Shown here: positions 16,534 through 22,500 of the stretch, piece by piece
Position numbering within the stretch: position 1 is the stretch's first letter
Layout of the letters: every line of letters begins with the position of its first letter
NCBI GenBank assembly: GCA_028826165.1
Contig: JAPDFW010000105.1
Span: 62,001 to 126,000, forward strand
Source of the DNA: Anaeramoeba ignava BMAN
Taxonomy: Eukaryota > Protista > Anaeramoebae
Direction of reading: 5' to 3'
Length of the DNA stretch: 64,000 nt
Position numbers and translations under genes: made by a program
Notes under the pieces: model-generated
Told to the model about the DNA's origin: nothing
Seen by the model: only the letters and a program-made list of their open reading frames with translations
Database searches by the model: none

Positions 16534-19500
16534 TTAATTAATTAATATATAATTTGGATGAACAACAAGAACTCTTTGATCTTCATCTTCATTATCTTCA
16601 ATTACAATCAAAACATGATCAATTGAAATTAATCTCTGCACAACTTGTCTAACAATTCTAGTTTCATTTTTTATTTCTTCTCTTGATTCAATTTCACTTT
16701 CAATTTCATTTAAATACCAATTAATAAGTTGAATTTGAGTTGGAGGATCAATTTGTCTTTCTTCAAGATCTCTGAGATGGATTGTTAGCATTTTTGCGAT
16801 TGTAGAATATTTTTCGAAAGTGATTTTGATTGGTTTATCTTTTTGATGATCTTTTGATTTTTTTTGCTTTTCTTGATTTTTCTCACTATTTGATTTGGAA
16901 TCATCATGAATATCATAAGTTGATTTTTTCTTTGAATCAGTATCAATTTGCAAGTCTTCAAGAGTAATATCATCAGTTTCAACACGAATGATTGATTTTG
17001 TTAAAAGTCTTGCAGCTTCTTTAACATATTTAGGTTTTACTTCTTCATCCAAATGGCATCTTGCAAGTGCTTCTGATAAACGAACTAATGATTCCAATTG
17101 ACGAACAGTTATTCTATAACTTGATCTATTGATTCCTATTGAATCATTTTGTCGCATTTTCCGATAAAATTCAATCATTAGATGCTGTGATTCTTTTGGA
17201 ATTTGTGGTTTGATTGTTTTTGCAAATCTGATGTATCTTTTGATTTGTTGAGTTGTGAATTCTGGTTGAACTGCTGTTTCCAAATTTTGGTGAACACTTA
17301 AAATGTGTCTTGCGATATTATAATCGATGACTTTAAATTAAAATTAAATTATAAAATTATTTAAAAAATTCATTTAAAAAATTAAAATAAAATTCATTTA
17401 TAAAATAAAATTAAAATTCATTTATAAAATTAAATTAAAATTCATTTATAAAATTAAACTAAAATTCATTTATAAAATTAAATTAAAATTCATTTATAAA
17501 ATAAAATTAAATTAAAAATTCATTTATAAAATTAAATTAAAAATTCATTTATAAAATTAAATTAAAAATTCATTTAAAAAAAATAAAAATTAAAATTCAT
17601 TTATTAAAATTAAAAATTAAAAAAATCATTTATAAAATTAAATTAAAAATCGGATAAAAAATTAAAATAAAAATCGGATAAAAAATTAAATTAAAAATCA
17701 TTTATAAAATTAAATTAAAAATCGGATAAAAAATAAAATTAAAAATCATTTAAAAAATTAAATTAAAAATCATTTATAAAATTAAATTAAAAATCATTTA
17801 TAAAATTAAATTAAAAATAATTTATAAAATTAAATTAAAAATCATTTATAAATTTAAATTAAAATTCATTTATAAAATTAAATTAAAATTCGGATAAAAA
17901 ATTAAAATTCATTTATAAAATTAAATTAAAATTCATTTATAAAATTAAAATTAAAATTCGGATAAAAAATTAAATTAAAAATCATTTATAAAATTCATTT
18001 ATAAAATTAAATTAAAATTAAATTAAAATTCATTTATAAAATTAAAAATCGGATAAAAAATTAAAAATACCTTCATCACATTCATCTAAAATAATAAAGA
18101 AAAGATCAAATCGGGACATAAGAGGAGCAGAAATAGTAATATTAGCCTTTAAAGTCTTAGTCTTATCATAACGACCTCCAACTGGATTAGCAGCAGCTAA
18201 AATTGAAGTTCTTGCATTCAATGTTGCTTGAATACCAGCTTTAGAAATAGAAATGGAATTATGAAAAACAATATTATCAAGTGATAAAAAGCAATGATGT
18301 GGTTCAATTGTAACATCATAAACAAATTGAGTGAAATTTTCATTTGAATTTTCAATTATTTTCACACTTTCAATTTTAACATGTTCCAATTTTCCTCCCA
18401 TTTCTATTCGAGGAACAAGCATTCCATTCTTAAGTGATTTTGCAGCAATTGTTGTGACACAATTCTTGTTTGGAAATTTTTCTAGGTTTGAGTCTATTTC
18501 CATTGTATTGAAAACAAAAACCGGATGTTCAGGTGTAACTATTGCTTTGGTACCATTACTGAAAGATATGGAAATAAAATAATTAGGAGCTAAATGACGA
18601 CTCACTCGAGAAACTTCGAGTGAAGAAACTTGCTGGAAATTTGTTGATAAAAGATGTTGTTGAAATCCAGAAAGGTTGATAATTTCACAATCAATCCCAT
18701 CAATTTTTTCCAACTTTAATTTTTCTTTTTCTGAAAAGAAATATTCAACATAATCTCCAATTCCTACTTCTCCAAGATCTGGTAAAAATAGTTTGAAGCT
18801 TGGATGGTAACTTTGCTGTTCCATAGCTTCGTGGATTGCTACTTGGTCTTTGATATCCATTTTATCAAACTCATCAATACATGCAATTCCCTATTTTTTA
18901 ATGAAATTATTTTAAAAAAAATATTGTTTGTTTTTCTTTGTGTTTTTGATTTAATGTTGGATTTATAGTTAATTTACGTTATCTGCTAGCATTAAAGCAC
19001 CAGCCTCTATTGCAAATTCACCAGTTTCAGGATCTTTAGAAACTGCAGCTGTTAAACTAATTTAATTGAAATCAAAATAAATATTTCAATATAAAAATAT
19101 TTAATATAAAAATATTTAATATAAAAATATTCCAATTAATATTTCAATATATAAATATAAATATAAAAATATTCCAATATAAAAATATTTAAAATAAATA
19201 TTCAAAATATAAAAATATTCAAAATAATATTTAATATAAAAATATTTAAAAAATAAAAATATTTAAAATAATATTCAATATAAAAATATTTAAAATAATA
19301 TTCAAAATATTCAAAATAAAAATATTTAAAATAAAAATATTTAAAACAATATTCAAAATATTTTTACCCTGCTGCACTATTGTGAACAAACATCATATCT
19401 CCAGTCATAAAATTTTCATCATCTTCAACACTAAAATCATAAACAAAATCTCCTTTTCTTGCTTTAATTTCATTAATTGATATAATTGGATCAAAAAAAA

Positions 19501-22500
19501 TATCACTCTTTCTTTCTTTTGATAAAATATTCTCTTCTTGTTCAATATTTTTTTTTTCGAAAAATAAATCTTCAAATTCTAATCCAAAAAATGGAATTTG
19601 TTCAATTAAATTAATTGCTTGTTTTCCTGAAACACAAACTTGATTTAATGATTTGGAAACTTTAAATATTGAAGAAATAACATTGAATCTTGCAAGTAAT
19701 AATTGAATATCATGAATAATTTCATTTGAATTAAAAGTGAAAATAATTGAAGGAATATTGGAATTAAATTTCCCAAAAATATGGAAAAGTGAAAAAAGTA
19801 AACCAGAAACGAATTTTTTTGAAGCAAGAAAAGAAAAAGAAGGAATTCTTAAATTTTGATTTGAATTTTGATTTGAATTTTGATTTGAATTTTGATTTGA
19901 ATTTTGATTTGAATTCTCGAAGAAATAATTCTTTAAATAATTAAATCTTGAATCGTTATTAAAGTGAATCGAATACATACAATCTCCATTCTTGCAAATA
20001 CTTGAACAGCTTATATCCCATTTTTTCTCAATAATTTTTCTTATAAAATCAATAAAGTAAATTGATTGATTATAAATTGTATATTGTTTATCCATTTTAC
20101 TCGGTTTATATTCACTTGAAAATGTCAAAGCAATCATAAAAGCTCCAAGTTCAAAATCAAGAGACATTTTTTCTTTGGGAATTTCTCCCACTTTTAAACG
20201 TTTGACTTGTTGGTTTTTAGGAATGTTGAATTTCTGTAAAATTGGAATCAAATGACCATTTTTTAATGAAGAACCTTTGGCGATTTGAATGTGATTATTT
20301 TTGTAAATCAAGAAAGAATGATTCTTTGTTGCGATAATTTCTCTTCCAGTTTGAGTTTTTATTTGGATTAAATCATTTTTTTGTGAATGTTTTATAACAT
20401 ATTGCACTTTGCAAAAACGAGCGTGATTTTTTCGAGTAATTGCCATAACTTCAATAGGCACTAAAGGAGGAGACCAAGAATGTCCATTTGAAACAACAAC
20501 GGTACCATGAGGCTTTGCTTGTGAAAGAGCCTTGTCAATCACATTTCCAATGGAGTCAATGTGAATAGTATCATTTATTTTGACAACAACTTTTTGGTCT
20601 CCGCGAATAGAAGAAGATCGGCCAGATGTATAAACAGCTCGAGGAGAAAAAGAAACAACGTATTTCAGGAATTGAGAGTTATGTGAGACCACAAAGTCGG
20701 ACAAAACAAACCGTTTGTTTTTGTCCAATGAAAATCCATAATAATGATCTTGTCCATATTTTTTAATCTCAAATCCGCTTGTTTTTAACATAAGATCAAT
20801 CGCTTTCTCTTCATTTTTCTCAAGATTCTCATTGATTTTTTTGGCTTGTTTTTGATGATCCACTTTTTTGAAATAAGAAGGCAAAAATTTGCCCTCAATT
20901 GAAATGAATTGAGAATTTTTGTTGTTATTACAAAGAAATCCTAATGATCTTGACAAGAAAAAAATGTCTTGTATTAAAGAATTTGAGAGTTTGCTTTTTG
21001 GTAAAGAAAATCCATATTTCAAATTTGGAATCCCAATTTTGTCAATGATTCCAGAAAGGACTTGTAACCGGTTGTTTTGGGAATTGCAAAGATAATTTTC
21101 TGGAATTTTCTTGATTGAATTCTTTTTTGAGTTGTTTAATCCCAGGATCTCATTTCCAAGTTGATAAGGATCTTTTTGAACTTCAGTTTTCTCAAATTCA
21201 ATGCTTGTGCGAAACACTTTGTAGCATTTTTGGAAGTGTCGAGGCTTTTGGAGAAAGTTTTTCACAGAAATATCGAGAATATCGCCTTGTTTGTTTATTT
21301 TGGGATCGTGCTTTTTTTGCTCAAGAAAAATTTGGGCTGCAGTTTGAGCTTCTTTTGGAGTTTTATAAAAGTTCAAAGAGGAAAAAGAATAACGGAAAAG
21401 GTGAAAAATTTCAGAGTTATCGACAGAATCAAAAAAACCAGCATCATCAAGAGAATTGGGACAGGAAAGGGAACCAGAAAGATTAGAGAAGAAGAATTGA
21501 CTGTGCAAAAGATGATTTTGAAAGAAGAAAACAACAAAGATGGAAAAATTATCAAAAGAGAATGAATGCAAAAAACAGCCCGAACTTCTGAGTTTTAAGG
21601 ACAAAACATGATCGGAGTTTACTGTCAAATCATGATGAGAGTCATGTGGAATAATGCGGTACATTGGACCAAATCCTCGTGAGATATTCAGAACTCTTCT
21701 TGGAGTTGAGTCGTCACCCATCAATAAATCTCCAATAAAAACATTTTGAACTTTTTTAATTGATCCATCAAACATCAATACTCTTGTGTTTTTGGCAAGA
21801 CATTTGGAAACCGAGGGATCGCCAACCAAACAGACATTAATATCTCCACGAAGATGCATTCCCTCTTGTGTGACTTTATGGACTCCTCCAAAGAGCATTA
21901 ATAAGATCCCACGTTTGACTTCTTCGTGTCCGAAAATAGTCGGTGCAATTGAGTTGACAAGTTTTGAATATATTTTAGGATCTGTTTTCATTTGCAAGAT
22001 TTCCATCTTCTCTTCTTGAGTAAGTTTCTCGAGAAAAGTCTCATCGTCGTCCTCTTGATTATCGATATTATTAGAAACATTTGTTTTGTGTTTATATTCC
22101 GAAAAAGTGGAACTTGCTTTTTGAACAAAATTGGCCACAAAGCACAACCTGTATGACAATTCGCGGACACCCAAGGCTTTAAGGCCGGTGACTCCGTGAA
22201 TGTTTTCCGAGAGACCTTCCTTATATGTGTCTTTACGGCGGGAAATTCCTGTTGTTTGTTCGCCAGGTCTAGTCAATTGAGCCAAGTCTGGAACTGCAAC
22301 CAAAGTACCTGAAAACAAGCATTTATCGCCTGCTTTTGCGTGTTCCACATTCTCTCCTCGAAGGATGACGGAGATTGATCTTGGGATTGTTCCTGAAGGA
22401 ATTTCGTTTGCGTTTTCTTGAACTCGTAATTTTTGCCAATCAGTGAAAATTGACTGTTCAAAATCAAGTGTCCATAATTTTCTATTTTGGCATGTGTTGT

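Follow-up and report, generated by a model that had tools for sequence, protein, structure and literature searches.

The window analysed here is a stretch of 64,000 nucleotides from the protist Anaeramoeba ignava BMAN (GenBank assembly GCA_028826165.1, contig JAPDFW010000105.1, positions 62,001 to 126,000 of the forward strand). It contains a gene for the replisome subunit MCM6 whose coding sequence carries three insertions, and sequence analysis confirms these as three true inteins of the class 1 type in a nuclear gene, which is striking and rare for a eukaryote. We consider it very probable that the only MCM6-like gene found in A. ignava has been invaded three times by unrelated inteins, that their nucleases are dead, and that each of them splices at the protein level to give an MCM6 of 811 residues.

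Three inteins in the nuclear MCM6 gene

The gene lies on the minus strand of a very A+T-rich contig, where five exons joined at four GT-AG introns (1693, 311, 87 and 740 nucleotides, in order) encode a precursor of 1782 residues (~205 kDa). The original prediction had placed in-frame inserts of 375, 411 and 185 residues at the junctions GDPSVSK/S, TSGRSS/SAAG and EAMEQQ/SISI, each ending in His-Asn and followed by Ser, and the gene model confirms all of this. The predicted spacing, with inteins 1 and 2 lying 22 codons apart and all three within ~100 host residues, is also found, as 22 host residues separate inserts 1 and 2 and 56 separate inserts 2 and 3, 78 in all.

Removal of the inserts leaves a host protein of 811 residues and 92.9 kDa, in which Pfam detects the MCM_N, OB, P-loop (AAA+ core), lid and MCM6_C domains. 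Database searches were made with single exons and inteins, and the joined host was compared only with fetched proteins. Among solved chains the best match of the host is MCM6, with an expect (E) value of 2e-57 for human MCM6. Alignment with four intein-free MCM6 orthologues gives 50–54% identity and zero gaps across all three junctions, so that excision yields a canonical MCM6, as had been proposed. By its sequence the host gene is a eukaryotic nuclear MCM6. It is the single MCM6-type gene among 23 MCM-domain matches in the A. ignava assembly, and a search of that assembly for a second MCM6 found none.

The Hint-domain profile search suggested with the original prediction places all three inserts above the Pfam cut-off, insert 1 with Hom_end_hint (2e-21) and inserts 2 and 3 with Intein_splicing (6e-19 and 2e-12). 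A weak trace of LAGLIDADG_3 is present in insert 2 only, and the NCBIfam profiles agree with Pfam. The length of every insert is a multiple of 3 with one stop-free frame, for which the chance at the insert's own base composition is small (log10 P of about -12, -16 and -7 for inserts 1, 2 and 3). The G+C content of the inserts is 26–33%, compared with 4–15% for the MCM6 introns, and GT/AG intron ends were looked for at the insert borders and are absent in all three.

The inserts begin with Cys, Ser and Ser, respectively. The class 1 splicing set of Cys or Ser at position 1, block B His, terminal His-Asn and host +1 Ser is kept in all three, and the block F Asp is kept in inteins 2 and 3. These residues are Cys1, His65 and His374-Asn375 in intein 1; Ser1, Thr95/His98, Asp392 and His410-Asn411 in intein 2; and Ser1, Thr93/His96, Asp166 and His184-Asn185 in intein 3. 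A structure model of intein 3 has a predicted local distance difference test (pLDDT) score of 91, and its top fold matches are all inteins, with a template modelling score of about 0.75. The single-sequence model of intein 1 (pLDDT 35) is uninformative. The three inteins resemble each other only slightly, the best E value being about 1e-4.

Insertion sites and intein families

In archaeal MCMs, site a is located in the P-loop, site b near the helix-2 insert and site c before the pre-sensor-1 hairpin, and sites d and e flank Walker B. The Haloferax MCM intein sites at residues 335, 362, 401 and 415 correspond to offsets of 0, +27, +66 and +80, and the A. ignava MCM6 inteins are found at offsets of 0, +22 and +78. 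Intein 1 directly follows the Walker A Lys, which is site a, and intein 3 is situated at site c, allelic with the archaeal MCM-c inteins. The original prediction had assigned all three insertions to classic archaeal MCM/CDC21 sites. This holds for inteins 1 and 3 but not for intein 2, for which sites b, d and e were rejected, since its offset of +22 places it five residues before b (+27). No publication was found that uses the label MCM-f. Some Nanobdellota MCMs (4 of 301 sampled genomes) also carry inteins, of a different family, at the non-classic site of intein 2. Archaeal MCMs with an intein at this position include one from Nanobdellota (L150) as well as L123, L149, L151 and P0335. L150 also carries an intein within Walker A whose end lies three residues short of site a, and one at b, five residues beyond the second.

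Site b is empty in A. ignava MCM6 and filled in A. flamelloides MCM6 (P0001, P0002), an orthologue with 54–59% host identity that NCBI annotates as intein-containing. It has one 410-residue intein, at site b, which differs from the three of A. ignava, and all three A. ignava sites are empty in it. Intron 2 of A. ignava MCM6 stops just short of the empty site b, which may fit the proposal, made in PMC10710043, that introns block homing sites.

Introns near intein sites were also observed in other MCM genes of A. ignava (L029:3905-4103, L030:5398-5060 and L031:6822-6440 for MCM7, MCM9 and MCM8). An intron lies exactly at the empty site a of MCM7, and in MCM3 (L028:4990-5540) an intron interrupts a Gly codon 5 nucleotides short of site b, which is empty; its position differs by one base from that of MCM6 intron 2. 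MCM9 has both an intron and an intein at site a, the intron separating the Walker A Lys from Cys1 of the intein, and in MCM8 an intron precedes the site-a intein by a few bases. Introns and inteins can therefore coexist at one site and do not only exclude each other.

Intein 1 belongs to the PI-SceI/Prp8-like inteins (E value of 5e-15 to PI-SceI). The Hom_end Hint domain, Cys1 and the terminal His-Asn are common to it and to the Sce VMA1 (PI-SceI) and fungal Prp8 inteins, which occupy other hosts and sites. In nearly all of its best 120 relatives the insertion directly follows a GK motif; the hosts are helicases, DnaB and AAA proteins and are mostly metagenomic. In the A. ignava genome it has 82 matches, including the site-a inteins of MCM3, MCM8 and MCM9. 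It did not match any of 26 archaeal site-a inteins, whereas the site-a intein of A. ignava MCM4 does match archaeal site-a inteins. Trees that took in about 13 family members from the A. ignava genome neither recovered nor rejected a single group of MCM3/6/8/9 site-a inteins (approximately unbiased (AU) test, p=0.11). The family of intein 1 is a promiscuous one, with dozens of members in this genome and insertions that directly follow the Walker A lysine in many ATPases from viruses, phages and bacteria.

The closest relatives of intein 2 in the A. ignava genome are the same-site inteins of MCM7 and MCM5. In a tree of the splicing domains, the MCM5/6/7 inteins group together (87/91) and stand next to the inteins of exportin-1 (81/85) and RNA polymerase (94/95). 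Grouping of intein 2 with archaeal inteins of the same site is rejected (AU p=0.004), and its profile E value is 3e-26 to a polymerase intein versus 1e-7 to the archaeal same-site inteins. Relatives outside the genome were sought in viral and metagenome contigs, and each gave one distant match (RNA polymerase-type and UvrB-type). There is moderate support from these comparisons for a non-allelic gain of intein 2, probably from the family of RNA polymerase large subunit and exportin-1 inteins, followed by movement among the paralogs MCM5, MCM6 and MCM7 at one equivalent site. Exportin-1 copies in the A. ignava genome (L048, L050) also carry inteins of this family, and an NCBI exportin-1 precursor from A. 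ignava matches a contig of the assembly with 100% identity across 1218 residues.

Relatives of intein 3 are almost all located at the E[AS]xEQ site of archaeal MCMs, with up to 48% identity, and many are mini-inteins of 160–190 residues. By these relatives, intein 3 is an archaeal MCM-c allele. No copy of it was found elsewhere in the A. ignava genome, all MCM paralogs included.

Nuclease decay, splicing and alternative explanations

The LAGLIDADG domains of inteins 1 and 2 are decayed. In intein 1, block E has Ile256 at the position of PI-SceI Asp326, and block C is without G-D-G. In intein 2, Ser and Phe occur in blocks C and E where relatives have Glu or Asp, and a five-fold NSNQ repeat is found at residue 233, in the nuclease linker. 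Intein 3 contains no endonuclease domain. The nucleases are thus predicted to be dead, unlike those of Haloferax mediterranei MCM-a and d, and because the acidic residues are lost or absent, present-day homing of the MCM6 inteins is unlikely. The original prediction that the conserved sites could allow homing among MCM paralogs finds support as a past event for intein 2 and may apply to intein 1; intein 3 is without a paralog copy. Work in Haloferax shows that two active inteins lying close together impede each other when homing into an empty allele. Such hindrance, together with three separate origins, fits a stepwise gain of the MCM6 inteins.

Removal of the four introns, which we infer from their GT-AG ends and the reading frame, would give the 1782-residue precursor. 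Each insert would then fold as a Hint domain and excise itself by the class 1 route, which is established intein chemistry and consists of an N-S or N-O shift at Cys1 or Ser1, transfer to the +1 Ser, and Asn cyclisation. Excision would restore three parts of the host, namely Walker A, the loop that precedes the helix-2 insert, and the segment leading up to the pre-sensor-1 hairpin. If selection acts on splicing, the one MCM6 found in the genome is expected to keep its splicing residues even where nucleases have decayed, and this is the pattern seen here. We propose that the inteins persist despite the loss of nuclease function because only a precise deletion would be tolerated in these host motifs.

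Alternatively, the inteins could be domesticated regulators whose conditional or alternative splicing gates the supply of helicase during oxygen or redox stress; one example would be joining of the start of intein 1 to the end of intein 2, with loss of the 22-residue spacer. All three have the same His-Asn/Ser C-terminal junction, two of them are separated by only 22 residues, and the title of Yalala 2022 names conditional alternative splicing by Haloquadratum walsbyi inteins. We regard this as improbable, since the arrangement is not conserved: A. flamelloides MCM6 is without all three and has another intein at site b. Cross-reaction between the MCM6 inteins is also less expected because they belong to different families.

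It is conceivable, if very unlikely, that at least one intein no longer splices, so that the precursor is non-functional or an unassembled second copy supplies MCM6. The branches are long and the nuclease linkers decayed, and inteins 2 and 3 are of the Ser1, +1 Ser kind, which is often slow. On the other hand, every splicing residue has been kept while nuclease residues decayed, the assembly search recovered no second copy, and MCM6 is essential in the eukaryotes studied.

For intein 3, a vertical relic from the Asgard-derived ancestor of eukaryotes, lost elsewhere, is an alternative to lateral gain. This mini-intein cannot home by itself. The top genome match is an Odinarchaeota MCM-c mini-intein, many other matches are from Heimdall-, Baldr- and Promethearchaeota, and the AU test (p=0.31) does not reject placing intein 3 with an Asgard-rich group. 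The free trees, however, put it away from Asgard, in a weak group (60/90) with DPANN and methanogen mini-inteins. Neither A. flamelloides MCM6 nor any of the A. ignava paralogs contains it, and the 150 matches listed included no relative at this site that was recognised as eukaryotic. Very many precise losses would be required, and we give vertical inheritance little credence.

Removal of the inserts at the RNA level as introns, or their origin as artefacts of assembly, is scarcely credible even in an intron-rich genome, given their stop-free frames, coding-like G+C content, missing GT/AG ends and Hint matches. Of the sequence words sampled from exon 2, a fraction of 0.82 is also present in an independent assembly of one public run, which may be the source sample.

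Several points nevertheless weigh against three unrelated, nuclease-dead and splicing-competent inteins gained by separate routes. RNA splicing and protein splicing of MCM6, the loss of endonuclease function in all three inteins, and the order and routes of their gain are deduced from sequence. The MCM5/6/7 grouping falls below the starred threshold of the tree tool, and an A+T-rich bias could be pulling the A. ignava intein sequences together in the tree. The trees of intein 1 and of intein 3 name no donor.

Genomic context and published inteins

Features of the MCM6 gene, with positions in the window and the basis of each assignment
Feature	Positions	Strand	Basis
Exon 1, start codon at 24713, MCM_N domain	24373..24713	-	gene model, domain search
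Intron 1, spliceosomal, GT-AG, 4% G+C	22680..24372	-	gene model, composition
Exon 2: OB fold, Walker A, intein 1, 22-residue spacer, intein 2	19368..22679	-	gene model, domain search
Intein 1, 375 residues, site MCM-a, PI-SceI/Prp8-like Hom_end family	20678..21802	-	domain search, motifs, relatives
Host spacer between inteins 1 and 2, 22 codons	20612..20677	-	gene model
Intein 2, 411 residues, non-classic site five residues upstream of MCM-b, RNA-polymerase/exportin-type family	19379..20611	-	domain search, motifs, tree
Intron 2, spliceosomal; starts 11 nucleotides after intein 2, stops 4 nucleotides before empty MCM-b	19057..19367	-	gene model, alignment
Exon 3, holds empty site b at 19053/19052	18978..19056	-	gene model
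Intron 3, spliceosomal	18891..18977	-	gene model
Exon 4: Walker B, intein 3, arginine finger	18071..18890	-	gene model, domain search
Intein 3, 185-residue mini-intein, site MCM-c, archaeal MCM-c allele	18258..18812	-	relatives, motifs, structure model
Intron 4, spliceosomal	17331..18070	-	gene model
Exon 5: AAA lid, MCM6 winged-helix domain, stop codon	16534..17330	-	gene model, domain search

Near the MCM6 gene, the plus strand has a 725-residue open reading frame (14151-16328) that encodes long repeats of Gln and Asn and a weak match to a GATA zinc finger; it ends roughly 200 bases away from the stop codon of MCM6, which is on the opposite strand. Two tandem peptidase S41 genes, from a mainly prokaryotic family, are located on the minus strand at 5555-12526. 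At least four genes with ankyrin repeats plus BTB lie in tandem (46831-48177 and 52651-61113) around a deoxyhypusine synthase gene (48236-49348) and a G-patch gene (50809-51900). Elsewhere in the genome, the site-b intein of MCM8 (L031:4829-4747) shows a frame change in mid-intein where the open frames overlap and no intron is apparent, and this reflects either an assembly indel or a real frameshift. A near-identical second copy of MCM4 with a site-a intein and several frameshifts is found at a contig end (L026, G000:C17:1-9000, versus L025, G000:C2), and it is either a haplotype or an assembly duplicate.

The original prediction noted that the locus may already be catalogued, and the three-intein MCM6 locus is indeed published. 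PMC10710043 (Gallot-Lavallee et al. 2023, PNAS) reports 103 inteins in A. ignava BMAN, in line with the intein-richness that the original prediction stated for Anaeramoeba genomes, and three inteins each in MCM6 and MCM8. The MCM6 site-c intein is given there as 185 residues, clustering with archaeal MCM inteins, and the MCM8 site-e intein as 160 residues; both lengths were recovered here. It also describes inteins shared between MCM paralogs, introns near the sites and a novel MCM site, which is starred in Fig. 5C and is likely the site of intein 2. The figure legend gives MCM3–9 as intein-bearing, and the paralog survey proposed with the original prediction likewise found inteins in all of MCM3–9, with MCM2 empty. 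The published MCM6 comes from the same species assembly and locus, and there is no difference in substance. Splicing was demonstrated there for three other Anaeramoeba inteins.

Compared with the archaeal multi-intein MCM/CDC21 proteins (PMC4760082, PMC3972481, PMC10643990), in which three or four inteins per protein also occur, A. ignava MCM6 has sites a and c in common, and intein 3 is the same allele. It differs in having an intein 1 other than the archaeal a allele, an intein 2 outside sites a–e, and a nuclear host gene with spliceosomal introns.

The locus and the general ideas were published in 2023; added here are the non-classic second site, its family of origin, the predicted dead nucleases and the independent use of the site in Nanobdellota. 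MCM6 of A. ignava would clearly exemplify an essential subunit of the eukaryotic replisome whose production requires three protein-splicing steps. The gene may also combine three ways of gaining an intein: spread to Walker A loops at the level of the motif, a non-allelic gain with spread among paralogs, and acquisition of an archaeal allele. The locus is a test case for the splicing order of close inteins and for introns that block homing sites.

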